This document shows, in pieces, positions 34,117 through 64,000 of a stretch of 64,000 bases of DNA. The notes below the pieces were generated by a model. That model saw nothing but the letters and a program-made list of their open reading frames with translations, searched no databases and was not told the DNA's origin. The stretch's first letter is position 1. Each line of letters opens with the position of its first letter. Source of the stretch: Dendrobates tinctorius (taxonomy: Eukaryota); NCBI RefSeq assembly GCF_039654945.1, contig NW_027361754.1, forward strand, positions 1,550,001-1,614,000, written 5' to 3'. Both the position numbers and the translations under genes were made by a program.

Positions 34117-38557
<4,441 letters not shown>

Positions 38558-38560
<3 letters not shown>

Positions 38561-38588
38561 GGCGGCGGCTGCGAGAGAAAGAGAGAGA
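38558..38588 (-). promoter_or_regulatory. RPL27A: RPL27A exon 1: 5'TOP/TCT tract, Kozak and ATG, then splice donor
   Basis: The - strand reads TCTCTCTCTTTCTCTCGCAGCCGCCGCC-ATG|gtaagt. Confidence 0.9.
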
Positions 38589-38745
38589 TCCCGGCAGCTC
38601 CCGCGAGAAGTAAGAGGGGGCGGGGACTGAGGGGGTAGGACGTCGTGTTACGGCGAGATCTCGCGAGACTTGAACGGTCACAGGTAACGTGACAGAAGCA
38701 TCGGCGGCGCCGAACACTAGAGGAGGCGGAGGCGGCCATATTGGG
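38589..38745. promoter_or_regulatory. CpG-rich bidirectional promoter with TCTCGCGAGA (BANP/CGCG element), GC box and YY1-like site; candidate non-coding exon 1 of the THAP gene ending at 38683
   Basis: TCTCGCGAGA at 38659-38668, TCCCGCGAGA at 38599-38608, GGGGCGGGG at ~38617-38625, GGCCATATT at ~38734, and + strand donor CAG|GTAACG at 38683/38684. Confidence 0.7.
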
Positions 38746-38949
38746 GGAGACACAGAGGCAAGTGCGACAACTGCGAGACGGCGCTCGGGACAGCAGCGCG
38801 GCGCTGTCACACGGACACCGAGGGTACACGGCCGTGCGTATGTACTGCTCTACTATGCCCCACCGTATACTGCCCATATACACTGTATACGGGGAGCGCA
38901 GGTACTGGGGAGGGGCTCCGCTGCGTAATGTACTGCAGATAGCCCCTGT

Positions 38950-40770
38950 ATGACGACCTGTGCCCCCCTTATCGCGCTGTATGATACCCTGCACCACCCC
39001 TATTGCACCGTATGACACTGCGCCCCCCTTATCGCACTGACACCCTCTGCGCCCCCTTTATCTCGCTGACACCCTCTGCGCCCCCTTTATCTCACTGACA
39101 CCCTCTGCGCCCCCCTTATCGCGCCGTATGACACCCTATGCGCCTCTTATCGCACTGACACCCTCTGCGCGCCCCTTAATGCGCTTACACTCTCTGGGCC
39201 CCTCTTATGCCGTATGACACTGCGCCCCCCTTATCGCACTGACACCCTCTGTACCCCCCTTATCGCACTGACACCCTCTGTACCCCCCTTATCGCACTGA
39301 CACCCTCTGTACCTCCCTTATCCCGCTGACACGCTCTGCGCCCCCCTTATAGCGACGTATAACACCCTCTGCGCCCCCCCTTATCGCGCTGACACCCTCT
39401 GGGCCCCTCTTGTCGTGCCGTATGACACCCTCTGCGCCCCCCTTATCGCGCCGTATAACACCCTCTGCGCCCCCCCTTATCGAGCTTACACTCTCTGTGC
39501 CCCTCTTATCGGGCCGTATGACACTGTGCCCCCCTTATCGCACTGACACCCTCTGCGCCCCCTTATCACTCCGTATGACACCCTCTGCGCCCCCCTTATC
39601 GCACTGACACCCTCTGCACGCCCCTTAACGCGCTTACACTCTCTGGGCCCCTCTTATGCCGTATGACACTGCACACCCCCTTATCACGCTGACACCCTCT
39701 GCGCCCCCCCTTATCGCCCTGACACCCTCTGCGCCCCCCCTTATCGCCCTGACACCCTCTGCGCCCCCCCTTATCGCCCTGACACCCTCTGCGCCCCCCC
39801 TTATCGCCCTGACACCCTCTGCGCCCCCCCTTATCGCGCTGACACCCTCTGGGCCCCTCTTGTCGTGCCGTATGACACCCTCTGCGCCCCCCTTATCGCG
39901 CTTACACTCTCTGGGCCCCTCTTATCGTGCCGTATGACACTGCGCCCCCCTTATCGCACTGACACCCTCTGCGCCCCCTTATCACTCCATATGACACCCT
40001 CTGCGCCCCCCTTATCGCACTGACACCCTCTGCACGCCCCTTAACGCGCTTACACTCTCTGGGCCCCTCTTATGCCATATGACACTGCACCCCCCCCTTA
40101 TCGCGCTGACACCCTCTGCACCCCCCCTTATTGCCCTGACACCCTCTGCGCCCCCCCTTATCGCACTGACACCCGTCTGCGCCCCCCCTTATCGCGCTGA
40201 CACCCTCTGGGCCCCTCTTGTCGTGCCGTATGACACCCTCTGCGCCCCCCTTATCGCGCTTACACTCTCTGGGCCCCTCTTATCGTGCCGTATGACACTG
40301 CGCCCCACTTGTCGCACTGACACCCTCTGCGCCCCCTTATCACTCCGTATGACACCCTCTGCGCGCCCCCTTATCGCACTGACACCCTCTGCGCGCCCCC
40401 TTATCGCACTGACACCCTCTGCGCCCCCCCTTATCGCACTGACTCCCTCTGCGCCCCCCCTTATCGCGCTGACACCCTCTGGTCCCCCCTTATCGCGCTG
40501 ACACCCTCTGGTCCCCCCTTATCGCGCTGACACCCTCTGGGCCCCCCTTATCGCGCTGACACCCTCTGGGCCCCCCTTATCGCGCTGACACCCTCTGGGC
40601 CCCTCTTGTCGCGCCGTATGACACCCTCTGCGCCCCCCCCTTATCTCGCTGACACCCTCTGCGCCCCCTTAGCGCACTGTATGACACCCTCTGCGCCCCC
40701 TTAGCGTGCCGTATGACACCCTCTGTGCCCCCCCCTATCGTGCTGACACTCTTTGCACCCCCCCCCCCCA
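38950..40770. repeat. ~30-bp GC-skewed minisatellite (TGACACCCTCTGCGCCCCCCTTATCGCRC)n in the presumed first intron of the THAP gene
   Basis: Dozens of degenerate tandem units with higher-order duplication; C-rich + strand. Confidence 0.92.
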
Positions 40771-40826
40771 GCTGCTGAGGCTGTGATGCTTTTCGCAGAT
40801 TGACATGTGTTTTCTTTAGAAGCGAG

Positions 40827-43800
40827 ATGACAGTGTGCGCCATGTTCGGGTGCAAGAATCGCAGGCACAAGGGATGCGGCAAGCACTTCTTCAGGTAATC
40901 CAGGTTGGGGGTTTCTCTCATTTTGTGGAACAGAACATGGAGCGCAGCATTCCTGTAGTATTAAGTCCCACAGCTCTGGGACTGCATTCCTCCTCATTCT
41001 CAGGATCTCTGCTCTTATTGCTAACAGCCTGTTCTGCTCACAGCTGCGGGTTTGCTCCTGCGTGTATCTTTTGTATCTGTCCCTGTGATCAGATCCCTTT
41101 GCCGTGGATCGCACTTTGCCATTTTAGTTGTACACTTTGTCTTGTGATTGTCCATGAAGCCCTGGACTGTCTGGGGCCATCGAATGCAGCGAGCGCTCTG
41201 TGACATTTGGGCCCCCCCAGCTCCATTCTCCATAATATCATGGATTGCTGGGCATTGTGGTTTTGCAGCAGCTATAAAGCTGTGGTTCAGGACGACTGCT
41301 AGGAGGAAGTTGGGGGTCTATGAGTGTTTCAATCCACTGACCACAAGCAGAGATAATGCAATTGGTAGAAACAACCATTTGTTGAGTAATAAATCTGTGA
41401 CTTCTTATCTGCAGGTTTCCCATGAAAGATCCGGAACGTCTCATAAAGTGGATTGAAGCCACCCAGAGAGATAACTGGAAACCGTCCATTCACAGCAAGG
41501 TCTGCAGCGACCACTTCACGGAAAAAGACTACATGATCCGTCCGGGGGCGGCCTTTCCTTACCTGCGCATTGACGCAGTGCCCACTCCCCTCCATCCTGA
41601 CCAACGGAAGAAGAAGACTAAAAAGAGGAATTATACTAAGAAAGTAGCAAGCGAAACTGCCGAACCCATGGAAATAAAGACTGAGGATGTGGAACAGGAG
41701 ATCTCCAGCGAGTATGGCTGCAGCTACAGAAAGGAGATTGGAACACAGACAGCTGCGCAAGTGGAGAAAACACAGAAGGTGGTGGAAGCGAGGGTGATAA
41801 AGAGTGAGGATGAATCGCAGGACGAGGAGCAAGTGGTGGTAGAAATGCAGGGCGAGGAGCATGGGGTGGTGGAAACGCAGGGTGAGGAGCATGGGGTGGT
41901 GGAAACGCAGGGTGAGGAGCATGGGGTGGTGGAAACGCAGGGTGAGGAGCATGGGGTAGTGGAAATGCAGGGCGAGGAGTATGGGGTAGTGGAAATGCAG
42001 GGCGAGGAGTATGGGGTAGTGGAAATGCAGGGCGAGGAGCACGGGGAGTTGGAAATGCAGGGTGAGGAGCACGGGGAGTTGGAAATGCAGGGCGAGGAGC
42101 ACAGGGCAATGGAAATGCAGGGCGAGGAGCACGGGGCAATGGAAATGCAGGGCGAGGAGCACGGGGCAATGGAAATGCATGGCGAGGAGCACGGGGCAAT
42201 GGAAATGCAGGGCGAGGAGCACGGGGCAATGGAAATGCAGGGCGAGGAGCACGGGGCAATGGAAATGCAGGGCGAGGAGCACGGGGCAATGGAAATGCAG
42301 GGCGAGGAGCACGGGGCAATGGAAATGCAGGGCGAGGAGCACGGGGCAATGGAAATGCAGGGCGAGGAGCACAGGGCAATGGAAATGCAGGGCGAGGAGC
42401 ACGGGGCAATGGAAATGCAGGGCGAGGAGCACGGGGCAGTGAAAGCGCAGGGCGAGGAGCACGGGGCGGCAGAAGTGCAGGGCGAGGAGCACGGGGCGGC
42501 AGAAGTGCAGGGTAAGGAGCACGGGGCGGCAGAAGTGCAGGGTAAGGAGCACGGGGCGGCAGAAGTGCAGGGTAAGGAGCACGGGGCGGCAGAAGTGCAG
42601 GGTAAGGAGCACGGGGCGGCAGAAGTGCAGGGTAAGGAGCACGGGGCGGCAGAAGTGCAGGGTAAGGAGCACGGGGCGGCAGAAGTGCAGGGTAAGGAGC
42701 ACGGGGCGGCAGAAGTGCAGGGTAAGGAGCACGGGGCGGCAGAAGTGCAGGGTAAGGAGCACGGGGCGGCAGAAGTGCAGGGTAAGGAGCACGGGGCGGC
42801 AGAAGTGCAGGGTAAGGAGCACGGGGCGGCAGAAGTGCAGGGTAAGGAGCACGGGGCGGCAGAAGTGCAGGGTAAGGAGCACGGGGCAGCGGAAAGAAAG
42901 GAGTGGCCTGTGGAAGCACAGGGCGTGGAGCACAGGGCTGCTGAAGTACAGGGTGAGGAGCAAAGGGCGGCAGAAGCACAGGAAAAGGAGCAAGAGGTGG
43001 CAGAAATGCAGGGTGAGAAGCATAGTGTGGCGGAAGCACAGGGTGAGGAGCACGGGGCAGTGGAAGTGCAGGGTGAGGAGCACAGGGCGGCTGAAGCCCA
43101 GGATGAGGAGCACGGGGCGGCGGAAGCACAGCAAGTGGAAGTGCAAGATGATAAGCAGTTGGTGGATTCGCAGCATGGGAAACAGATGGTAAAAGCACAG
43201 GGTAAGCAGCCAGTGGAGTCTCAGGCCATGGAGGTGCAGGGTGAGGAGGAAACAGAAGGTGACATGCATATGGGCAAAGCTCAGAGAAAGCAGAATATGG
43301 ATGTGCATACACAGGGCAAGAAGAAGGTGACAGAAGAGCAGGAAGGGAAGCGTGCAGGGGAAACACAAAATAAAAGGCATAAGGAGGAAATACAGGACAA
43401 GGAGCAGGCGCTGGTATCACCAGAGGAGGTGAGTGTGGAGGGTACAGAGTGTGAGATGCTGGATGTAATAGGGCAGGGAGAGAAAATGAACGTGGGATGG
43501 CAGGCTGAGGGTCCAGCAGTGGGAGAGCAGGCTGAGGGTCCGGCATTGGGAGGGCAGGCTGAGGATCCGGCTGTAGAATCTCGGGATGCAAATATGGAGT
43601 CACCATCTCTAAATGATCAACTGGATGTGGCAGAGCGGCCAACGGAGTGCAAGTGGGCGACAACTAAACAGCCCGCTCGTAAGCCAACAGTGAATGGACA
43701 GGGCAGGAACCGGAGGGCAGGTGCACTGACGGGGAGTTGTCTACCTGACCTGACCATTGTAGTGAACCAGACTGTCAGGAACTTTCCATCCAGACCTCCC

Positions 43801-44751
43801 TGTGAGAATGCAGCTGATTACATTCCCGTTGACCACTCATACTACACTGCATTTGGCGACAAGGAAAACGAGGTTCCTGCCCCCGTCACTGACCCAAAAG
43901 TTGTGAAATTGAGAAAAAAGATCAAAACATTACAAAAGCAAGTCCTGCGCCAGGGCGTCAAGATCAAGAGCCTGAAAAAGTCGCTAGTTAATTTACAGAA
44001 AAACAACATGATGGAGATAGATCCGGAGCAAGTGGTCGCTGAGCACTGCAGCGGCCTCACTCAGGTTCTGTTCACACAACAGCTGAAGAACGGCTGCCGG
44101 CGGCACAGTGTCACCCAGTACTGCAGCCTCATGAAGGAGTTCGCTTTAAACCTGTACTGCGCATCCCCAAAGGCTTACAAATTCTGCAGACTTTTTCTGT
44201 GCCTTCCGCACCCCGTATCTTTGAGAAACTGGAAAGCAGCCATTGAGGGAAACATGGGACCCTCATCTGATGGTTCTGCCCCTGATAATCCTACATTGGG
44301 GGCATTATTTGTAGGGAATGAACATTTACAGGATAGTCCTATTCAAGAAGTAGCTTTGCAGGGACAATCAATTGAAGAGAGACATTTGCCAGAGACCCCC
44401 ATAGAGATGGCACATTTGCCAGTGATGCCAATGCAAGAAGGACATTTTTCTATCATTCCAGGTCTGGAAGGACACTTGTCTGTGGTTCCAGTGCCGGAGG
44501 GACACTTGTCTGTGGTTCCAGTGCCGGAGGGACACTTGTCTGTGGTTCCAGTGCCGGAGGGACACTTGTCTGTGGTTCCAGTGCCGGAGGGACACTTGTC
44601 TGTGGTTCCAGTGCCGGAGGGACACTTGTCTGTGGTTCCAGTGCCGGAGGGACACTTGTCTGTGGTTCCAGTGCAAAATGGAGATTTCTCTGTGATTCCA
44701 GTGCACAAGGGACATTTGCAGCAATCATCTGTGCAGGAGGAACTGCAGTAA
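40827..44751 (+). CDS. THAP-domain protein (~1134 aa; exons 40827-40894 and 41415-44751), THAP9/P-element-transposase-derived, lacking the catalytic domain
   Basis: Spliced N-terminus MTVCAMFGCKNRRHKGCGKHFFR|FPMKDPERLIKWIEATQRDNWKPSIHSKVCSDHF...LRIDAVPT (C2CH, conserved P/W/F, AVPT box). GT-AG phase-2 intron. DHSY motif, coiled coil, and YCSLMKEFALNLYCASPKAYKFCRLFLCLPHPVSLRNW. Uninterrupted 3.3-kb frame. Confidence 0.9.
41842..42890 (+). repeat. Coding 30-bp tandem repeat (~35 units; QGEEHGVVET > QGEEHGAMEM > QGKEHGAAEV)
   Basis: Exact 30-nt periodicity that preserves the frame. Variants are arranged in homogeneous blocks. Confidence 0.95.
44467..44672 (+). repeat. Coding 30-bp tandem repeat (EGHLSVVPVP) x ~7
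   Basis: GTGCCGGAGGGACACTTGTCTGTGGTTCCA repeated identically. Confidence 0.95.
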
Positions 44752-46188
44752 TCAATGCAAGACTTAATGGTGGCTCCATAAATTGTACCTGTGCCGACTT
44801 CTATAAAGTTTGTTCTATAAAAGCAACTTTACTGCAAAAAAATCAGTTCAGTGTTGTCATAGTGGTAGGTTAAGATCTCATCATTGACAGGAATAAGGAT
44901 GTGAAACCAAACAATGTCCTATCGGCAGTACTGGACTGTCAAATCGTGACCTGAAAAGTTGTGAATGAGAAAGAACAGGATTTCTCCAGTAATATGCAAT
45001 GGTGTGTGCAGTTCTGCAGTGGTAATCCAAATGATCTGCACACCGTCACTGCTGTCTACCCTTCCTGTAATAATTACCTGATATAGGGTTTTGCTCCGGT
45101 CCAGGGGTCCTGGTTCTGTAGCTTCATCTTTGGTCCTAGCTGCTGATTCCAGAGACGTTGCATTACCCTCTGCACAGCTGTATTCCTGCACATGTGAGAG
45201 CCAGAGCAACCGCTGGGGGGGAGCTCGTTGTGCTGCGCTGTCTTCGTAACTCCCATTAATTATATCTCAATTCCATGTACCGTGCTCCTTCCCTAATGGT
45301 CGGAGCCCGGCCTAAGATATTCCTTTAATGGCCATTTAACACTTAATGCACTTAACACGTCTGATGCTGGTGTATGGAATGGGCTCAAGAGAAGCCATTT
45401 AACCTTTTGAATGCCAGTGTCCATCACCCACTACTTAAGTATGCTGATGGATCCACAACCGCTATGGCAACCCATCTAAGGCCGCACCCAGCATCCCTGT
45501 TCTCCCATGTAGACCAAGCAGAGGAGCAGCTCAAGTTCTATATGGTCATTTTTACCTTTTTAAGTCCAGGTGGGTGTTATCTTATAGATTTCACAGAATT
45601 GCATTTTTTTTCAACTTTTCTCTGTGAAATTTTTTTTAAAAAATTTTCCTTTATTTTATCTACATTTTTTTCAGTACCGTGATGGTAAAATTAATGGTGA
45701 TATTCAAAACTACAACTTTTGTGACCACAAACAATCCCTTAAACGCTGTGTAGGCAAAACAATAAAATGCTTAAGGCTCTTGAAAGAAGAGAATAGACAG
45801 CGAAAAAATGTCCGGTTGCTAATCATTAAAAAAAAAAATATGGCTGGAAAATAGAAAATGTCAAAATCCAGAATAAACTGTATCTTGGTTACCAGCTTTC
45901 TGCACCAGCGCGCTGGCTTCTAACATACACAGCGAGTAACTAAGCAACGTGCGCGCTTGTTACCCGCGTCGTCGCTGTCCTGATCGCTGCTGAGATCTGC
46001 CTGTTTGACAGCTCACCAGCGATCATGTAGCGACACATCAGCGATCCTGACAAGGTAATATTGTCGGAATCGCTGGTGCGTCGCTATGTGTGACTGGGCC
46101 CTTACACTGTGGCTGATGACCTCCAGCCGTGGCTCCTTCAGAAGCAGGACATTGACAAGGGACTATCCAGAGATAAGATGCTGGGTTA

Positions 46189-46739
46189 AGGCCCCGTCAC
46201 ACACAGCGAGATCGCTGATTTTGTGACGCCACAGCGATCTCGCCAGCGACATCGCTGTGTGTGACACACATCAGCGACTGGGCCCCCCGCCGGGTATCGC
46301 TGATCGTGCAGGATCGTCCTGGGCCATTTTTTAATCGTTGCTCTCCCGGTGGCCAGCGCGCATCGCTGCGTGTGGCAGCGGGAGCCAACGATCAGCGAGG
46401 CTCCCAGCGCTCTAAGCAGGTGCTGGGAGCTGGTATCTAAGAAAAATATCGGGTTACTAAGCGGCGGGCGTCACTTTGTTACCCGATGTGTACCTTAGAA
46501 ACCTGCGTGCTCGCAGCTCCCGGCGCGAGCACAAAGGTTTCTAAGGTACACATCGGGTAACTAAGTGACACGCGCTGCTTAGTAACCCGATATTTACCTT
46601 AGATACCAGCGTCCTCGCTGGTGCTGATTGCTGGTGAAGCTGCCTGTTTGGCAGCTCACCAGCGATCATGTAGCGATGCACCTGACAAGGTCGTATCGTT
46701 GTCGGGATCGCTGGTGCATCTTTAAGTGTAACGGTACCC
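46189..46739. mobile_element. Harbinger-type MITE (same family as 1066-5608); a partial copy lies at ~45880-46103
   Basis: (tta)AGGCCCCGTCACAC...GTGTAACGGTACCC(tta) and internal inverted repeats. Confidence 0.75.
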
Positions 46740-47392
46740 TTACTTTACGCAGGTGGCTTTAGTGGCAGATTTTCTGTTTGACTCGGTTGAGCAGTCTAGG
46801 CTATCCGCCCGTGCCATGGTGCTATCTACTACAGGCAAAAGGGCTCTGGCTAAAACAATGAGGGGTGGATGTACTCTCTAGAAGTGCCTTCTGTTCCATG
46901 GAATTTGAGCTAGGGCATCTCTTTGGGGCTCAGGTGGACGCATTAATGGAGAATCTAATAAGGAAGGAAAGACCCTTCCAGTCGGATAAAGATGAAGTTC
47001 TTTATTTTGAGACCAAGACTGAAGCAGAGTCGGCAGGACTCGGAGGAGAGGGCCTCCTCGAGTGGAGGTAGAGCCTCGAACAGTCTCTGGTAGGCGTCAA
47101 GAGAACTTTTCAGACCTTCCTCCTCTTCCAATGAGGTTGGATTTCTGACACCAAGGACCTGCCAGTGGGGGGTATGTTTTTTTTTTTTTTTTTTTTCCAC
47201 CAGTGGCAGAGCCTAGTAAGAGACCTCTGGGTCCTAGATATCAGATATCATAAGAGGTGGTTTCCATAGAGAGTTTCTTACACCCCCTGAAAGATTCGCT
47301 ACTACGCCAGGAATGCACAGAATGAAGTGGCTTTTAGAAACATCTATAATCTTATCAATATGCGGATCCTAGTTCCAAAGCCATTCAACAGA

Positions 47393-49035
47393 TAGTCATA
47401 TGTTAAAGTTTGGGCACCCCTATTAATGTTAACCTTTTTTCTTTATAACAATTTTGTTTTTTGCAACATTTCAGTTTCATATATCTAATAACTGATGGAG
47501 TCAGTTATATTTCTGGATTCAAATGAGGTTTATTGTACTAACAGAAAATGTGCAATCTGCATTTAAACAAAATTTGACCGGTGCAAAAGTATGGGCACCC
47601 TTATCATTTTCTTGATTTGAACACTCCTAACTACTTTTTGCTGACTTCCTGAACCACTAAATTGGTTTTGTAACCTCATTGAGCTTTGAACTTCATAGCC
47701 AGGTGTATCAAATCATGAGAAAAGGTATTTAAGGTGGCCACTTGCAAGTAGTTCTCCTATTTGATTCTCCTATGAAGAGTGGCATCATGGGCTCCTCAAA
47801 ACAACTCTCAAATGATCTGAAAACAAAGATTATTCAACATAGCTTTTCAGGGGAAGGATACAAAAAGTTGTCTCAGAGATTTAACCTGTCAGTTTCCACT
47901 GTGAGGAACATAGTAAGGAAATGGAAGAACACAGGTACAGTTCTTGTTAAGTCCAGAAGTGGCAGGCCAAGAAAAATATCAGAAAGGCAGAGAAGAAGAA
48001 TGGTGAGAGCAGTCAAGGACAATCCACAGACCACCTCCAAAGACCTGCAGCATCATCTTGCTGCAGATGGTGTCACTGTGCATCGGTCAACAATACAGCG
48101 CACTTTGCACAAGGAGAAGCTGTATGGGAGAGTGATGTGAAAGAAGCCGTTTCTGCAAGCACGCCACAAACAGAGTCGCCTGAGGTATGCAAAAGCACAT
48201 TTGGACAAGCCAGTTACATTTTGGAAGAAGGTCCTGTGGACTGATGAAACAAAGATTGAGTTGTTTGGTCATACAAAAAGGCGTTATGCATGGAGGCTAA
48301 AAAACACAGCATTCCAAGAAAAACACTTGCTACCCACAGAAAAATTTGGTGGAGGTTCCATCATGCTTTGGGGCTGTGTGGCCAATGCCGGCACCGGGAA
48401 TCTTGTTAAAGTTGAGGGTCGCATGGATTCAACTCAGTATCAGCAGATTCTTGAAAATAATGTGCAAGAAAAAGTGAAGAAGTTGAAGTTACGCAGGGGA
48501 TGGATATTTCAGGAAGACAATGATCCAAAACACCGCTCCAAATCTACTCAGGCATTCATGCAGAGGAACAACTACAATGTTCTGGAATGGCCATCCCAGT
48601 CCCAAGACCTGAATATCATTGAACATCTGTGGGATGATTTGAAGCGGGCTGTCCATGCTCGGCGACCATCAAACTTAACTGAACTGGAATTGTTTTGTAA
48701 ACAGGAATGGTCACAAATACCTTCATCCAGGATCCAGGAACTCATTAATAGCTACAGGAAGCGACTAGAGGCTGTTATTTTTGCAAAAGGAGGATCTACG
48801 AAATATTAATGTCACTTTTATGTTGAGGTGCCCATACTTTTGCACCGGTCAAATTATGTTTAAATGCAGATTGCACATTTTCTGTTAGTACAATAAACCT
48901 CATTTGAATCCAGAAATCACTGAGTCCATCAATTATTAGATATATGAAACTGAAATAGCTGTTGCAAAAACCAAAATTGTTATAAAGAAAAAAGGTTAAC
49001 ATTAATAGGGGTGCCCAAACTTTAACATATGACTG
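47393..49035 (+). mobile_element. Full-length Tc1 transposon with long (~210 bp) IR/DR-type TIRs
   Basis: AGTCATATGTTAAAGTTTGGGCACCCCT at both ends in inverted orientation, inner repeat AAAAGTATGGGCACC, and right-hand TA. Confidence 0.92.
47787..48809 (+). pseudogene. Tc1 DD34E transposase (340 codons) with one in-frame nonsense codon at 48138-48140
   Basis: ORFs 47742-48140 and 48201-48809 are in the same frame. GRPRK, WTDETK and FQEDNDPKH...34 aa...E. Confidence 0.92.
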
Positions 49036-54859: not shown

Positions 54860-55516
54860 TAAGAGCGGTGAATCTGTGGAATAGTCACTAGAGTTGAGCG
54901 AATTTGATCGGGTCCCTGCTTATTGGCAAGTTATAGCACTTACCTATAAGCTGCAAAGGGAACCAGGATACGTGGAGCATACCGGCTGATCAGCTGTCCG
55001 GTGCCGCAGTTGCATGGAGAGCCTGTGTATTGGGAATTTGGTGAATGATGAGAAGCTGCTTCTATCTGTACATGGAGAATTACGTGCATTGTGGTCTTAT
55101 AGGAGGTGAGGGCCCACCGGGGAATTTACCTCCGCTGTGTGCCGGTCCGAGCCCGATCAGCTTTATACACTGCAGGCTGGAGACGTGACTGATCACATGG
55201 TCATGACATCATCAAAGGTCCTTTAGCCCAGATAGCCTGACTCCTCCCATAACGGATCACATGGTCATGACAGGTCCTTCAGCATTGGGATCTGCGCTCT
55301 AGTGAGGTGGTTGAGCTGCGGGACATCAGCACAGAGTGGCCGCCCTGCTGCAACACCTCCGGCCCATCCCGGTGAGTGCAGACTGCCTCTCGTCCGCCCC
55401 AGACTCCGAATGTGTGGGAGCGTCTGCTGCTCCGGAGTCTGGGGGCGCGGGGTCACCGAGAGCGACCAGGCCGGTACACAGCACAAACGGTGGCGTCTGC
55501 TGAGATCAACAATCCG

Positions 55517-58500
55517 CTCACACACATCCCACACTGAGATGCACACTGCTGAGACACATCCCACACTGAGATACATCCCACACTGAGATACATCCCACAC
55601 TGAGATACACACACACACACACACACACACACGCTGCCGAAATACATCCCACACTGAGATACACACACACGCTGCCGAGATACATCCCACACTGAGATAC
55701 ATCCCACACTGAGATGCACACTGCTGAGACACATCCCACACTGAGATGCACACTGCTGAGACACATCCCACACTGAGATGCACACTGCTGAGATACATCC
55801 CACACTGAGATACATCCCACACTGAGATGCACACTGCTGAGACACATCCCACACTGAGATGCACACTGCTGAGATACATCCCACACTGAGATACATCCCA
55901 CACTGAGATACATCCCACACTGAGATACATCCCACACTGAGACACATCCCACACTGAGATGCACACTGCTGAGACACATCCCACACTGAGATGCACACTG
56001 CTGAGATACATCCCACACTGAGATACATCCCACACTGAGATACATCCCACACTGAGACACATCCCACACTGAGATGCACACTGCTGAGACACATCCCACA
56101 CTGAGATGCACACTGCTGAGATACATCCCACGCTGAGATACATCCCACACTGAGATGCACACTGCTGAGATACATCCCACACTGAGATGCACACTGCTGA
56201 GACACATCCCACACTGAGATGCACACTGCTGAGACACATCCCACACTGAGATGCACACTGCTGAGACACATCCCACACTGAGATGCACACTGCTGAGACA
56301 CATCCCACACTGAGATACATCCCACACTGAGATGCACACTGCTGAGACACATCCCACACTGAGATGCACACTGCTGAGACACATCCCACACTGAGATGCA
56401 CACTGCTGAGATACATCCCACACTGAGATACATCCCACACTGAGATGCACACTGCTGAGACACATCCCACACTGAGATGCACACTGCTGAGACACATCCC
56501 ACACTGAGATGCACACTGCTGAGATACATCCCACACTGAGATACATCCCACACTGAGATACATCCCACACTGAGACACATCCCACACTGAGATGCACACT
56601 GCTGAGACACATCCCACACTGAGATGCACACTGCTGAGATACATCCCACACTGAGATACATCCCACACTGAGATACATCCCACACTGAGACACATCCCAC
56701 ACTGAGATGCACACTGCTGAGACACATCCCACACTGAGATGCACACTGCTGAGATACATCCCACGCTGAGATACATCCCACACTGAGATGCACACTGCTG
56801 AGATACATCCCACACTGAGATGCACACTGCTGAGACACATCCCACACTGAGATGCACACTGCTGAGACACATCCCACACTGAGATGCACACTGCTGAGAC
56901 ACATCCCACACTGAGATGCACACTGCTGAGACACATCCCACACTGAGATGCACACTGCTGAGACACATCCCACACTGAGATGCACACTGCTGAGACACAT
57001 CCCACACTGAGATGCACACTGCTGAGATACATCCCACACTGAGATGCACACTGCTGAGACACATCCCACACTGAGATGCACACTGCTGAGACACATCCCA
57101 CACTGAGATGCACACTGCTGAGACACATCCCACACTGAGATGCACACTGCTGAGACACATCCCACACTGAGATGCACACTGCTGAGACACCTCCCACACT
57201 GAGATGCACACTGCTGAGACACCTCCCACACTGAGATGCACACTGCTGAGACACCTCCCACACTGAGATGCACACTGCTGAGACACCTCCCACACTGAGA
57301 TGCACACTGCTGAGACACCTCCCACACTGAGATGCACACTGCTGAGACACCTCCCACACTGAGATGCACACTGCTGAGACACATCCCACACTGAGATGCA
57401 CACTGCTGAGACACATCCCACACTGAGATGCACACTGCTGAGACACATCCCACACTGAGATGCACACTGCTGAGACACATCCCACACTGAGATGCACACT
57501 GCTGAGACACATCCCACACTGAGATGCACACTGCTGAGACACATCCCACACTGAGATGCACACTGCTGAGACACATCCCACACTGAGATGCACACTGCCG
57601 AGACACATCCCACACTGAGATGCACACTGCCGAGACACATCCCACACTGAGATGCACACTGCCGAGACACATCCCACACTGAGATGCACACTGCCGAGAC
57701 ACATCCCACACTGAGATGCACACTGCCGAGACACATCCCACACTGAGATGCACACTGCCGAGACACATCCCACACTGAGATGCACACTGCCGAGACACAT
57801 CCCACACTGAGATGCACACTGCCGAGACACATCCCACACTGAGATGCACACTGCCGAGACACATCCCACACTGAGATGCACACTGCCGAGACACATCCCA
57901 CACTGAGATGCACACTGCCGAGACACATCCCACACTGAGATGCACACTGCCGAGACACATCCCACACTGAGATGCACACTGCCGAGACACATCCCACACT
58001 GAGATGCACACTGCCGAGACACATCCCACACTGAGATGCACACTGCCGAGACACATCCCACACTGAGATGCACACTGCCGAGACACATCCCACACTGAGA
58101 TGCACACTGCCGAGACACATCCCACACTGAGATGCACACTGCCGAGACACATCCCACACTGAGATGCACACTGCCGAGACACATCCCACACTGAGATACA
58201 CACACACTGCCGAGATACATCCCACACTGAGATACACACTGCCGAGATACATCCCACTCTGAGATACACACTGCCGAGATACATCCCACACTGAGATGCA
58301 CACTGCCGAGATACATCCCACACTGAGATGCACACTGCCGAGACACATCCCACACTGAGATGCACACTGCCGAGACACATCCCACACTGAGATGCACACT
58401 GCTGAGACACATCCCACACTGAGATGCACACTGCTGAGACACATCCCACACTGAGATGCACACTGCTGAGACACATCCCACACTGAGATGCACACTGCTG

Positions 58501-59087
58501 AGACACATCCCACACTGAGATGCACACTGCTGAGATACATCCCACACTGAGATGCACACTGCTGAGACACATCCCACAGAGATGCACACTGCTGAGACAC
58601 ATCCCACACTGAGATGCACACTGCTGAGACACATCCCACACTGAGATACACACACACACACGCTGCCGAGATACATCCCACACTGAGATACACACTGCCG
58701 AGATACATCCCACACTGAGATGCACACTGCCGAGATACATCCCACACTGAGATGCACACTGCTGAGACACATCCCACACTGAGATGCACACTGCTGAGAC
58801 ACATCCCACACTGAGATGCACACTGCTGAGACACATCCCACACTGAGATGCACACTGCTGAGACACATCCCACACTGAGATACACACTGCTGAGACACAT
58901 CCCACACTGAGATACACACACACACGCTGCCGAGATACATCCCACACTGAGATACACACACACACGCTGCCGAGATACATCCCACACTGAGATACACACT
59001 GCTGAGACACATCCCACACTGAGATACACACTGCTGAGACACATCACACACTGAGATACACACTGCCGAGACACATCACACACTGAG

Positions 59088-59124
<37 letters not shown>

Positions 59125-59487
59125 CGAGACACATCACACACTGAGATACACACACATGCTGCCGAGATACATCCCACACTGAGATGCACACTGCTGAGAC
59201 ACATCACACACTGAGATACACACTGCCGAGACACATCACACACTGAGATACACACACTGCCGAGATACATCACACACTGAGATGCACACTGCCGAGACAC
59301 ATCACACACTGAGATGCACACTGCCGAGACACATCACACACTGAGATACACACACACACTGCCGAGATACATCCCACACTGAGATACACACACACACGCT
59401 GCCGAGATACATCCCACACTGAGATGCACACTGCTGAGACACATCACACACTGAGATACACACTGCCGAGACACATCACACACTGAG

Positions 59488-59534
<47 letters not shown>

Positions 59535-60025
59535 CGAGATACATCCCACACTGAGATGCACACTGCCGAGACACATCACACACTGAGATACACACTGCCG
59601 AGACACATCACACACTGAGATACACACACACTGCCGAGACACATCACACACTGAGATACACACACACTGCCGAGATACATCCCACACTGAGATACACACA
59701 CACGCTGCCGAGATACATCACACACTGAGATGCACACTGCTGAGACACATCACACACTGAGATGCACACTGCTGAGACACATCACACACTGAGATGCACA
59801 CTGCTGAGACACATCACACACTGAGATGCACACTGCTGAGACACATCACACACTGAGATGCACACTGCCGAGACACATCACACACTGAGATACACACACA
59901 CACACTGCCGAGATACGTCCCACGCCGAGATACATCCCACACTGAGATGCATCCCACACTGCCGAGACACATCCCACACTGAGAGACACGCGCACTGCCG
60001 AGACACATCCCACACTGAGAGACAC
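55517..60025. repeat. 32-bp satellite (GAGACACATCCCACACT + GAGATGCACACTGCT) with 17-bp subunit runs and (CA)n expansions
   Basis: Direct periodicity; the 32-aa period recurs in all three - strand frames. Confidence 0.97.
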
Positions 60026-60254
60026 AACATCCCTACAGTCCCTATCCCTATTCCCTTTTGTGCACTTGCTTTGGCTAAACTAATGTGTATTTAGTCCTGC
60101 CAATAAAGCTTCTTTGAAGTTGATATACCCCCCACTGACATATAGACGCCCCACACATATCCCCCCCCCACACTGACGTACGCTTCCTCACACTGATATA
60201 CAGCCGCCCCACACTGAGAAACTCCCCACACTGATATACATCCCCCCACACTGC

Positions 60255-63200
60255 TACTGAGAGACACGATCCGCCCAGATACACCCCGCACTGAGAGAGG
60301 AGACACGCGATCCACCGAGATACAACCCCCCCCCGGCACTGAGACACACGATCCATTGGGATAGTACCCCCCCCCCCGCACTGAGACACGCGATCCGCTG
60401 AGATAACTCCCCCCCCCCGCACTGAGACATGCAATCCGCTGAGATAACGCCCCCCCTCCGCACTGAGACACGCGATCCGCTGAGATAACGCACCCCCCCG
60501 CACTGAGACGCGCGATCCGCTGAGATAACGCACCCCCCCGCACTGAGACGCGCGATCCGCTGAGATAACGCACCCCCCCGCACTGAGACGCGCGATCCGC
60601 TGAGATAACGCACCCCCCCGCACTGAGACGCGCGATCCGCTGAGATAACGCACCCCCCCGCACTGAGACGCGCGATCCGCTGAGATAACGCACCCCCCCG
60701 CACTGAGACGCGCGATCCGCTGAGATAACGCACCCCCCCGCACTGAGACGCGCGATCCGCTGAGATAACGCACCCCCCCGCACTGAGACGCGCGATCCGC
60801 TGAGATAACGCACCCCCCCGCACTGAGACGCGCGATCCGCTGAGATAACGCACCCCCCCGCACTGAGACGCGCGATCCGCTGAGATAACGCACCCCCCCG
60901 CACTGAGACGCGCGATCCGCTGAGATAACGCACCCCCCGCACTGAGACGCGCGATCCGCTGAGATAACGCGCCCCCCCCGCACTGAGACGCGCGATCCGC
61001 TGAGATAACGCGCCCCCCCCGCACTGAGACGCGCGATCCGCTGAGATAACGCGCCCCCCCCGCACTGAGACGCGCGATCCGCTGAGATAAGGCCCCCCCC
61101 CGCACTGACACGCGATCCGCTGAGATAAGGCCCCCCCCCGCACTGACACGCGATCCGCTGAGATAAGGCCCCCCCCCGCACTGACACACGCGATCCGCTG
61201 AGATAACCGATAACTCCCCCCGCACTGAGACACGCGATCCGCTGAGATAACCCCCCCGCACTGAGACACGCGATCCGCTGAGATAACAACCCCCCCGCAC
61301 TGAGACACGCGATCCGCTGAGATAACGACCCCCCGCACTGACACACGCGATCCGCTGAGATAACCGATAACCCCCCCCCGCACTGAGACACGTGATCCGC
61401 TGAGATAACCGATAACCCCCCCCGCACTGAGACACGTGATCCGCTGAGATAACCGATAACCCCCCCCGCACTGAGACACGCGATCCGCTGAGATAACGAC
61501 CCCCCGCACTGACACACGCGATCCGCTGAGATAACCGATAACCCCCCCCCTTGCACTGACACACGCGATCCGCTGAGATAACCGATAACCCCCCCCTTGC
61601 ACTGACACACGCGATCCGCTGAGATAACCGATAACTCCCCCCGCACTGAGACACGCGATCCGCTGAGATAACCCCCCCCCGCACTGAGACACGCGATCCG
61701 CTGAGATAACCCCCCCCCGCACTGAGACACGCGATCCGCTGAGATAACCCCCCCCGCACTGAGACACGCGATCCGCTGAGATAACCCCCCCGCACTGAGA
61801 CACACGATCCGCTGAGATAACGATAACCCCACCCGCACTGAGACACGCGATCCGCTGAGATAACGCCCCCCCGCACTGACACGCAATCTGCTGAAATAAC
61901 CGATAACCCCCCCCGCACTGAGACACGCGATCCGCCGAGATAACGCCCCCCGCACTGAGACACGCGATCCGCCGAGATAACGCCCCCCGCACTGAGACAC
62001 GCGATCCGCCGAGATAACGCCCCCCGCACTGAGACACGCGATCCGCCGAGATAACGCCCCCCGCACTGAGACACGCGATCCGCCGAGATAACGCCCCCCG
62101 CACTGAGACACGCGATCCGCCGAGATAACGCCCCCCGCACTGAGACACGCGATCCGCCGAGATAACGCCCCCCGCACTGAGACACGCGATCCGCCGAGAT
62201 AACGCCCCCCGCACTGAGACACGCGATCCGCCGAGATAACGCCCCCCGCACTGAGACACGCGATCCGCCGAGATAACGCCCCCCGCACTGAGACACGCGA
62301 TCCGCCGAGATAACGCCCCCCGCACTGAGACACGCGATCCGCCGAGATAACGCCCCCCGCACTGAGACACGCGATCCGCCGAGATAACGCCCCCCGCACT
62401 GAGACACGCGATCCGCCGAGATAACGCCCCCCGCACTGAGACACGCGATCCGCCGAGATAACGCCCCCCGCACTGAGACACGCGATCCGCCGAGATAACG
62501 CCCCCCGCACTGAGACACGCGATCCGCCGAGATAACGCCCCCCGCACTGAGACACGCGATCCGCCGAGATAACGCCCCCCGCACTGAGACACGCGATCCG
62601 CCGAGATAACGCCCCCCGCACTGAGACACGCGATCCGCCGAGATAACGCCCCCCGCACTGAGACACGCGATCCGCCGAGATAACGCCCCCCGCACTGAGA
62701 CACGCGATCCGCCGAGATAACGCCCCCCGCACTGAGACACGCGATCCGCCGAGATAACGCCCCCCGCACTGAGACACGCGATCCGCCGAGATAACGCCCC
62801 CCGCACTGAGACACGCGATCCGCCGAGATAACGCCCCCAGCACTGAGACACGCGATCCGCCGAGATAACGCCCCCCGCACTGAGACACGCGATCCGCCGA
62901 GATAACGCCCCCCGCACTGAGACACGCGATCCGCCGAGATAACGCCCCCCGCACTGAGACACGCGATCCGCCGAGATAACGCCCCCCGCACTGAGACACG
63001 CGATCCGCCGAGATAACGCCCCCCGCACTGAGACACGCGATCCGCCGAGATAACGCCCCCCGCACTGAGACACGCGATCCGCCGAGATAACGCCCCCCGC
63101 ACTGAGACACGCGATCCGCCGAGATAACGCCCCCCGCACTGAGACACGCGATCCGCCGAGATAACGCCCCCCGCACTGAGACACGCGATCCGCCGAGATA

Positions 63201-64000
63201 ACGCCCCCCGCACTGAGACACGCGATCCGCCGAGATAACGCCCCCCGCACTGAGACACGCGATCCGCCGAGATAACGCCCCCCGCACTGAGACACGCGAT
63301 CCGCCGAGATAACGCCCCCCGCACTGAGACACGCGATCCGCCGAGATAACGCCCCCCGCACTGAGACACGCGATCCGCCGAGATAACGCCCCCCGCACTG
63401 AGACACGCGATCCGCCGAGATAACGCCCCCCGCACTGAGACACGCGATCCGCCGAGATAACGCCCCCCGCACTGAGACACGCGATCCGCCGAGATAACGC
63501 CCCCCGCACTGAGACACGCGATCCGCCGAGATAACGCCCCCCGCACTGAGACACGCGATCCGCCGAGATAACGCCCCCCGCACTGAGACACGCGATCCGC
63601 CGAGATAACGCCCCCCGCACTGAGACACGCGATCCGCCGAGATAACGCCCCCCGCACTGAGACACGCGATCCGCCGAGATAACGCCCCCCGCACTGAGAC
63701 ACGCGATCCGCCGAGATAACGCCCCCCGCACTGAGACACGCGATCCGCCGAGATAACGCCCCCCGCACTGAGACACGCGATCCGCCGAGATAACGCCCCC
63801 CGCACTGAGACACGCGATCCGCCGAGATAACGCCCCCCGCACTGAGACACGCGATCCGCCGAGATAACGCCCCCCGCACTGAGACACGCGATCCGCCGAG
63901 ATAACGCCCCCCGCACTGAGACACGCGATCCGCCGAGATAACGCCCCCCGCACTGAGACACGCGATCCGCCGAGATAACGCCCCCCGCACTGAGACACGC
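60255..64000. repeat. CpG-rich 37-40-bp satellite (CGCACTGAGACACGCGATCCGCCGAGATAACGCCCCC)n running off the window
   Basis: A 40-bp block at ~60480-60930, a mixed zone, then near-perfect 37-bp units from ~61915. Confidence 0.97.

Follow-up and report, generated by a model that had tools for sequence, protein, structure and literature searches.

A spliced THAP gene beside RPL27A in neobatrachian frogs, very probably derived from the N-terminal part of a P-element-type transposase

Gene structure and transcription

The stretch analyzed here, which we call the window, is 64 kb of Dendrobates tinctorius DNA (contig NW_027361754.1, assembly GCF_039654945.1), and all coordinates are positions in it numbered from its first letter. 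At 40827-44751 it carries a gene whose protein combines a THAP zinc finger with a helix-turn-helix (HTH) domain of the P-element transposase type, and this gene stands head-to-head with the ribosomal protein gene RPL27A (Table 1). A preliminary description made from the letters of the sequence had put it forward as a domesticated P-element gene lacking a catalytic core. When the sequence was read directly, coding exons 40827-40894 and 41415-44751 gave a protein of 1134 amino acids (aa). There are 68 coding bases between the ATG at 40827 and the donor; the exon end at 40894 (AG/gt) joins 41415 (ag/G) in phase, codon 23 being rebuilt as AGG, Arg, within FFR/FP, and the frame is then open to the TAA at 44749-44751. 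The spliced and intact open reading frame (ORF) of the preliminary description was thus borne out at all of its coordinates, and the first two cysteines of the zinc finger, C4 and C9, are indeed on an exon of their own.

Contigs from public sequencing runs were aligned to 40764-41816. In each of four runs, which come from four studies and carry two species labels, a contig begins at 40820, leaves out the 520 nt bounded by GT..AG and runs through 41816, which is the junction that had been predicted. In two runs the spliced contigs have ends upstream of 40820 whose last 30 bases place uniquely at 38808-38837, with gt next, and therefore a non-coding first exon exists. An 87-nt loose contig end puts the start of this exon at or before about 38751. 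The THAP gene is transcribed and spliced from three exons.

Intron 1 contains a 29-bp satellite that is C-rich on the plus strand (39018-40763, about 58 copies, 77% matches) and lies entirely within it. It is because of this satellite that the ORF track used for the preliminary description lacks the 5' exon. The database models of Ranitomeya imitator (P0001) and Rhinoderma (P0004) have N-terminal extensions that appear to be a translated 5' untranslated region (UTR) exon, as judged from exon positions and a similar peptide stretch and not from an alignment; their true start is probably the methionine of MTVCA, as in the other orthologs. Extra exons carrying a catalytic core were considered and rejected, since the Phyllobates model has the same C-terminus and no locus has catalytic similarity.

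Table 1. Features of the THAP gene and of its RPL27A neighbor in the window
Feature	Position	Strand	Remarks
RPL27A	34117-38560	-	tblastx against annotated Mixophyes RPL27A (PF00828), 88-94% identity, four coding-exon matches
Two SNORA3/SNORA45 snoRNAs (H/ACA)	35615-35745, 36622-36752	-	Rfam RF00334, 96.7 and 91.4 bits; in RPL27A introns
Head-to-head promoter region	38561-38750	.	common to RPL27A (minus) and the THAP gene (plus)
Non-coding first exon (5' UTR)	at least 38751-38837	+	ends before the donor gt (38838); may begin farther 5'
Intron 1	38838-40819	+	contains the 29-bp satellite
Exon 2	40820-40894	+	ATG at 40827; aa 1-22 and two bases of codon 23; C4, C9
Intron 2	40895-41414	+	520 nt, GT..AG, phase 2
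Rest of THAP finger and basic patch QRKKKTKKRNYTKK	41415-41629	+	C53, H56, AVPT 77-80; Pfam THAP
Acidic low-complexity region	41752-43746	+	decapeptide units, then degenerate acidic sequence
DHSY	43831-43842	+	aa 829-832; fits the (D/E)HxY HCF-1-binding motif consensus
Basic coiled coil KVVKLRKKIKTLQKQVLRQGVKIKSLKKSLVNLQKNN	43876-44001	+	AlphaFold2 helix; 31% K+R
P-transposase-type HTH	44002-44244	+	PF12017, 6P5A profile match, fold match
C-terminal tail	44245-44751	+	decapeptide EGHLSVVPVP; TAA 44749-44751

Domain organization of the protein

The order of parts in the protein is THAP finger, basic patch, acidic repeats, DHSY, basic coiled coil, P-transposase HTH and a tail of 10-residue repeats. 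Pfam recognizes only two families in it, THAP (PF05485) and Tnp_P_element (PF12017). Membership of the THAP family was judged by the pattern C-X2-4-C-X35-53-C-X2-H together with a conserved P, W and F and a C-terminal AVPT box, and the protein has C4-X4-C9-X43-C53-X2-H56 along with P25, W35, F57 and AVPT at 77-80. The first coding exon supplies C4 and C9 and the second supplies W35, C53, H56, F57 and AVPT. The part after intron 2 (exon 3) matches PF05485 by itself with an E value of 3.6e-9, while orthologs with the whole domain match at about 5e-16 over profile positions 1-85 of 87. The nearest solved THAP domain in the Protein Data Bank (PDB) is that of human THAP1 (E 7e-13). The basic patch behind the finger, QRKKKTKKRNYTKK, is a putative nuclear localization signal.

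The acidic array that follows has about 38-45 decapeptide units with the consensus EMQGEEHGAx, amounting to about 440 aa of 10-residue repeats with 27% D+E. Tandem Repeats Finder resolved it into a 30-bp unit repeated 36 times at 41817-42895, with degenerate units continuing to 43131. Since the units are 96% identical, the array expanded recently. The sequence of the unit, its period and the length of the array vary by species, and the proteins range from 508 to 1134 aa.

The DHSY motif lies about 20 residues N-terminal to the coiled coil. It reads DH[SA]Y in seven of the seven orthologs that were read and EHSY in the frog paralog described below, and (D/E)HxY also occurs in a P-like transposase fragment (P0010). 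Human THAP9 carries an HCF-1-binding motif (HBM) at residues 123-126 (PMC10824691). Since both THAP9 and the P-like fragment have the motif, it was inherited with the transposase part and not added to it; the consensus noted in the preliminary description is there, but it is native to THAP9-type transposases.

Next comes the basic coiled coil, KVVKLRKKIKTLQKQVLRQGVKIKSLKKSLVNLQKNN, which is close to invariant across the orthologs. An AlphaFold2 model of residues 843-966, with a mean predicted local distance difference test (pLDDT) score of 86, consists of a single long helix and, after it, a bundle of five helices; the coiled-coil helix takes up model residues 8-43, where pLDDT is about 72-96 and for most of the length exceeds 90. 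The bundle contains the stretch YCSLMKEF...SLRNW (44119-44232, aa 925-962) that the preliminary description had read as a P-transposase HTH, and three comparisons agree with that reading. It matches PF12017 with an E value of 3.2e-13 and 50 bits (cutoff 23), the match covering profile positions 2-73 of 73. A profile built from 88 coiled-coil and HTH sequences matches the Drosophila P transposase structure 6P5A (E 2e-5), and the alignment passes through the A..L...P.AY...LP...L..W motif. Finally, in an exhaustive structure comparison the model superimposed on residues 130-199 of 6p5a_A with Z 6.9 and a root-mean-square deviation of 2.8 A over 69 residues, ranking first among 48,161 PDB chains; the remaining matches, with Z of at most 5.3, were generic single helices lying on the coiled coil. 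The 88-sequence profile was needed because a PDB sequence search with the single C-terminal piece gave no match, and Foldseek against the PDB likewise gave none for the coiled-coil and HTH model.

The tail is encoded by a different 30-bp unit, repeated 8.4 times at 44466-44718 (Tandem Repeats Finder). The EGHLSVVPVP motif and the C-terminal end are identical in Phyllobates, and related units are found in Leptodactylus and Rhinoderma. In Mixophyes and Hyperolius the tail has an E-x-x-L-Q type of repeat in place of EGHLSVVPVP. The tail had been called an unrelated repeat; the repeats are real, but the tail is conserved among the hyloid orthologs. In P transposases the RNase H N-terminal domain opens directly past the HTH with C.PG[FHY]L.EV, for example QPGHLTEV (P0035, P0012, P0040), and the alignments of the Mixophyes and Hyperolius proteins to P transposases extend a few residues beyond the HTH. 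It may be that a remaining stub of the RNase H domain was amplified to give the tail, although the similarity is very short.

Loss of the catalytic core and immobility

In the Drosophila P transposase the order of domains is THAP, coiled coil, HTH, RNase H with a GTP-binding insertion and a C-terminal domain, and the HTH contacts the terminal inverted repeat (TIR) of the element (PMC7776569). None of the RNase H and GTP-binding families PF21787, PF21788 and PF21789 has a Pfam match in the frog protein. The DNA was searched by tblastn with four full-length P transposases, each of which has THAP, HTH, RNaseH_N, the GTP-binding domain (GBD) and RNaseH_C by Pfam and one of which also has THAP9_C. 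They matched the 64-kb window at the THAP finger and at the coiled coil and HTH only, with no match to a catalytic part, and a catalytic remnant was likewise absent from four orthologous loci taken with 10-kb flanks. Since it has neither an RNase H nor a GTP-binding domain, this is a transposase-derived protein and not a transposase. There is one copy of the gene in the window, without TIRs: no inverted repeats flank it within 37500-47500, and the window contains no P element or P-like TIR. The immobility that the preliminary description had supposed is further seen in the position of the gene next to RPL27A, which is fixed in three other species.

Orthologs, synteny and selection

Word-indexed and exhaustive protein searches found orthologs of the same architecture in 11 other neobatrachian species. 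Those in hyloids are from Ranitomeya imitator, Phyllobates terribilis, Leptodactylus fuscus and Rhinoderma darwinii; the others are from Mixophyes fleayi (Myobatrachidae) and from Hyperolius, Pyxicephalus, Staurois, Gastrophryne and Mantella (Ranoidea). All of these carry both Pfam domains and are 65-92% identical across the C-terminal part. In addition, Engystomops probably has a partial ortholog, judging from its sequence. The next protein matches drop abruptly to at most 41% identity and are all either the frog paralog or P-transposase-like, and the exhaustive protein search found no non-frog protein above 41% identity to the C-terminal part. The gene had been called lineage-specific. It is found throughout the Neobatrachia sampled (Hyloidea, Ranoidea and Myobatrachidae) and not in one species only, and it has a paralog and a wider family.

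RPL27A is head-to-head with the gene in Rhinoderma, Phyllobates and Mixophyes, as it is in the window. It is annotated on the opposite strand in Rhinoderma and Mixophyes and was located by tblastx in Phyllobates and the window. In Hyperolius RPL27A was not found within 10 kb upstream of the coding start; since a non-coding first exon may lie farther off, this is no evidence against synteny. An exact look-up of the Leptodactylus ortholog gave no contig. Downstream, the Mixophyes ortholog is followed by a gene with FYRN and FYRC domains, for which the window had only matches to repeats; the window probably ends before the next downstream gene.

The ratio of non-synonymous to synonymous substitution (dN/dS) was calculated by the method of Nei and Gojobori (NG86) among five species for each domain block. 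The THAP part gave 0.03-0.20 and the part comprising HBM, coiled coil and HTH gave 0.07-0.26, with dS from 0.26 (Phyllobates) up to saturation (Hyperolius). The selection that the open frame had suggested is thus seen over 0.03-0.26 in dN/dS. The gene has the features by which domesticated genes are recognized, namely distant syntenic orthologs, an intact ORF, purifying selection and transcription; it is an expressed host gene beside RPL27A that has been under selection for well over 100 million years. The orthologs have only automatic names, 'uncharacterized' or 'THAP5-like', and the gene appears not to be described in the literature found by full-text search. Clear orthology to a described THAP gene, which the preliminary description had named as one of four findings that would overturn its proposal, was not found. 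The other three did not turn up either: the stretch 44119-44232 does match P transposases by profile, the single copy in the window has no TIRs and holds a fixed position instead of being one of many dispersed copies, and dN/dS is well below 1 in a gene with spliced contigs.

Relatives of the gene in frogs

Some 17 neobatrachian species have a paralog, about 276 aa long, that came to light in a search with the Hyperolius 'THAP1-like' protein. Its plan is THAP, EHSY, coiled coil and HTH without repeats. This paralog, named 'THAP domain-containing protein 1-like' (P0007 in Hyperolius, P0190 in Phyllobates), has the same first-exon break and the same start, MTVCA..GCKNR..KGCGKHFFRFP, but both the acidic array and the repeat tail are missing, and over the coiled coil and HTH its identity is about 40%. 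In Phyllobates the paralog and the gene next to RPL27A are on different chromosome-scale records, and the paralog has no neighboring gene within 10 kb. Other frog relatives lack the HTH. In pelobatoids these are proteins of about 206 aa that go no further than the coiled coil, and in pipids, pelobatids and neobatrachians they are proteins having two or three THAP domains. No remnant of the HTH was found downstream of the short Spea gene at E of 1 or less. The coding sequence is broken after residue 23 in the short Spea gene, the Phyllobates paralog and the window gene alike, and in every frog member of the family that was examined intron 2 interrupts the same codon. In view of this common exon break the family arose by gene duplication and not by repeated insertion. 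The short gene of Spea bombifrons (206 aa; L005 1-11936) is head-to-head with an ARID4-type gene (RBB1NT, ARID, Tudor-knot), which makes this pair a second divergent-promoter arrangement within the frog THAP family.

In a tree of the coiled coil and HTH the clade of the gene and that of the 276-aa paralog (support 99 each) are sisters with a Shimodaira-Hasegawa-like approximate likelihood ratio test (SH-aLRT) value of 88, and both are nested among proteins bearing RNase H and GBD. Within the clade of the gene (clade B) the hyloids group together and the ranoids group together, which matches the species tree. A tree of THAP and coiled coil recovered four frog clades, their order being a polytomy with a single long outgroup. 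THAP-domain scores were 107-176 bits within the frog family, compared with 47 for human THAP1 and 52 for the best P-like protein. Since the THAP domain is no closer to P transposases than to human THAP1, the P ancestry of the gene rests on the coiled-coil and HTH part.

The RPL27A neighbor and other features of the window

On the minus strand RPL27A starts with an ATG at 38560-38558, and GTAAGT follows immediately. The reverse complement of 38561-38590 is a pyrimidine tract, which we take to be TOP-like (terminal oligopyrimidine), and the first exon of the THAP gene is about 160-190 bp from this tract and the ATG. The shared promoter also has a palindrome, TCTCGCGAGA, at 38659-38668 and, at 38736-38744, the sequence GCCATATTG, which is presumably YY1-like. 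The gap between the two gene models is 122 bp in Rhinoderma and wider in Mixophyes. The SNORA3/SNORA45 elements are conserved at the Mixophyes, Rhinoderma and Phyllobates loci by tblastx.

About 1.7 kb past the stop codon there is a near-perfect hairpin at 46429-46610 with 86-nt arms, 91% complementary, and a 10-nt loop. A smaller hairpin is at 46196-46265, and both look like miniature inverted-repeat transposable elements. On the minus strand at 55265-63998 three overlapping ORFs of more than 1100 aa occupy all three frames with strong GC and AT skew, a sign of long satellite or low-complexity DNA rather than of a gene.

Comparison with known systems

The Drosophila P transposase (DmTNP, 6P5A) and human THAP9 have the same N-terminal order as the frog protein, that is, THAP, coiled coil or leucine zipper, and PF12017 HTH. 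The frog protein differs from them in having no split RNase H, GTP-binding insertion or C-terminal domain, in having about 700 aa of acidic repeats between THAP and HBM, and in the repeat tail that replaces the catalytic part. Truncated P proteins of Drosophila, the KP protein (207 aa) and the 66-kDa repressor, likewise consist of N-terminal DNA-binding and dimerization parts without catalysis, and the P-neogenes of the obscura and montium groups are stationary, lack TIRs and are conserved between species. The frog case is an independent event in vertebrates. Its transposase part stops right after the HTH and so is longer than that of KP and shorter than that of the 66-kDa protein, and unlike these repressors it has an HBM, large repeat arrays and a promoter common to a ribosomal protein gene; a repressor role for it is putative. 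Human proteins of the THAP1 and THAP5 type have the same type of THAP finger and (D/E)HxY followed by a coiled coil, but the THAP1 type ends after the coiled coil whereas the frog protein keeps the P-type HTH. The frog gene appears to be new, while its kind is already known from the truncated and immobile P-derived genes of Drosophila and from the vertebrate THAP factors.

Origin and function

The domains present, the missing catalytic core, the orthologs and their synteny, the purifying selection and the splicing lead us to propose that this is very probably a single-copy, immobile host gene of neobatrachian frogs that originated from the non-catalytic N-terminal part of a P-element/THAP9-type transposase. 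It would be transcribed from the promoter that it holds in common, head-to-head, with RPL27A, and the basic coiled coil would dimerize the protein. Each subunit would then have two DNA-binding modules, the C2CH THAP finger and the HTH, acting at specific sites; the equivalent HTH of the Drosophila P transposase reads the inner half of the TIR. DH[SA]Y could recruit HCF-1 as a co-regulator, and the acidic decapeptide array and the repeat tail may be disordered spacer or effector regions. Overall the product would be a nuclear, dimeric, sequence-specific DNA-binding regulator with two reading heads. Whether it acts as a transcription factor or as a transposon repressor is something that we can only infer.

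Several points weigh against this proposal. The tree of THAP and coiled coil does not root the frog family, and in principle the HTH could have been acquired later by an older THAP gene. The THAP domain is about as near to human THAP1 as to P transposases (47 and 52 bits). Dimerization, DNA binding and HCF-1 binding are predicted from homology, and THAP5 has an HBM yet does not bind HCF-1 (PMC10824691), so that the motif by itself is insufficient. The absence of the gene outside Neobatrachia is an absence from protein databases and not from genome searches. Lastly, the runs with spliced contigs are only guessed to be RNA, although the spliced form itself indicates RNA; a processed DNA copy would yield identical joints, which is unlikely in four small assemblies from two species.

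The gene could instead be a host-encoded repressor of P-like transposons, the vertebrate counterpart of KP, the 66-kDa repressors and the obscura/montium P-neogenes, with THAP and HTH occupying the ends of P elements and the coiled coil poisoning active transposase through mixed oligomers. Its architecture is the N-terminal part of the transposase that the Drosophila repressors kept, and its HTH, which reads the TIR in DmTNP, is under purifying selection while other frog relatives have THAP, HBM and coiled coil without it. Truncated transposase does bind P DNA and repress transposition (PMC7776569). We nevertheless consider such a role unlikely, because synteny over Hyloidea, Ranoidea and Myobatrachidae and a bidirectional promoter with a ribosomal protein gene point to a constitutive host role, because the window has no P element or P-like TIR, and because known repressors have no counterpart of the large acidic array and tail. 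Even less probable is that the gene is an ordinary member of an old vertebrate THAP1/THAP5-like family without a separate domestication, either because the P-type HTH is ancestral and was lost in most vertebrates or because the frog genes are diverged THAP1 co-orthologs. The automatic NCBI names 'THAP5-like' and 'THAP1-like', the rank of human THAP1 as nearest solved THAP domain and the pelobatoid relatives of about 206 aa, whose THAP, HBM and coiled coil are exactly the layout of THAP1, agree with it, and the phase-2 intron after the FFR/FHK codon presumably coincides with THAP1 intron 1, exon 1 of which we take to end at c.71. However, in the exhaustive search identity falls at once from 66% for frog orthologs to 40% or less and no THAP1 or THAP5 ortholog of other vertebrates is among the matches. 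In addition, THAP1 scores no better than P transposases over the THAP domain, and the synteny is with RPL27A, or with ARID4 for the short Spea gene, neither of which we believe to be a neighbor of human THAP1 or THAP5. That the long frame is partly an artefact of tandem repeats, with the THAP and C-terminal parts alone being of importance, or a decaying non-autonomous P copy left open by chance, is hardly credible. It is true that arrays hold frames open on both strands, minus-strand ORFs of 683 and 675 aa covering the same array, and that the near-identical units are a recent expansion. But one frame runs through the non-repeat parts before and after the array, and purifying selection is strong on each of them; every ortholog has an array that preserves the frame, whatever its units and length, and there are spliced transcripts and synteny across frog families.

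Returning to the proposed origin from a transposase, a further and more speculative idea, which is doubtful but which we rate slightly above the repressor, is that one set of intron-sharing paralogs preserves the successive stages of a change from a P transposase into a regulator of the THAP1 type. These might have led from THAP-HBM-coiled coil-HTH-(core) to THAP-HBM-coiled coil-HTH, as in clades A and B of Neobatrachia, and then to THAP-HBM-coiled coil, as in pelobatoids. On this tentative scheme the tail too would have come from tandem amplification of the few residues, PG[FHY]L..V, left over from the beginning of the RNase H domain. If the scheme is true, erosion of P transposases may have given rise to the THAP1-like factors of vertebrates in general, and the HTH kept in frogs would be a second, testable DNA-reading module.

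Significance

To our knowledge, only one domesticated vertebrate P transposase is known, the full-length THAP9, other THAP factors being tied to P elements by the zinc finger alone. In the frog gene and its paralog, both of them from vertebrates, the second DNA-binding domain of the transposase, the HTH, survives after the loss of all catalytic parts, and this is the same solution as that of the KP-type repressors and P-neogenes of Drosophila. At least a dozen frog annotations that carry the automatic names can thereby be corrected. Since the gene is old, under purifying selection and driven by a ribosomal protein promoter, it is a clean system for studying how THAP and HTH together recognize their targets, and it raises the question whether proteins with both domains regulate host genes or police transposons.

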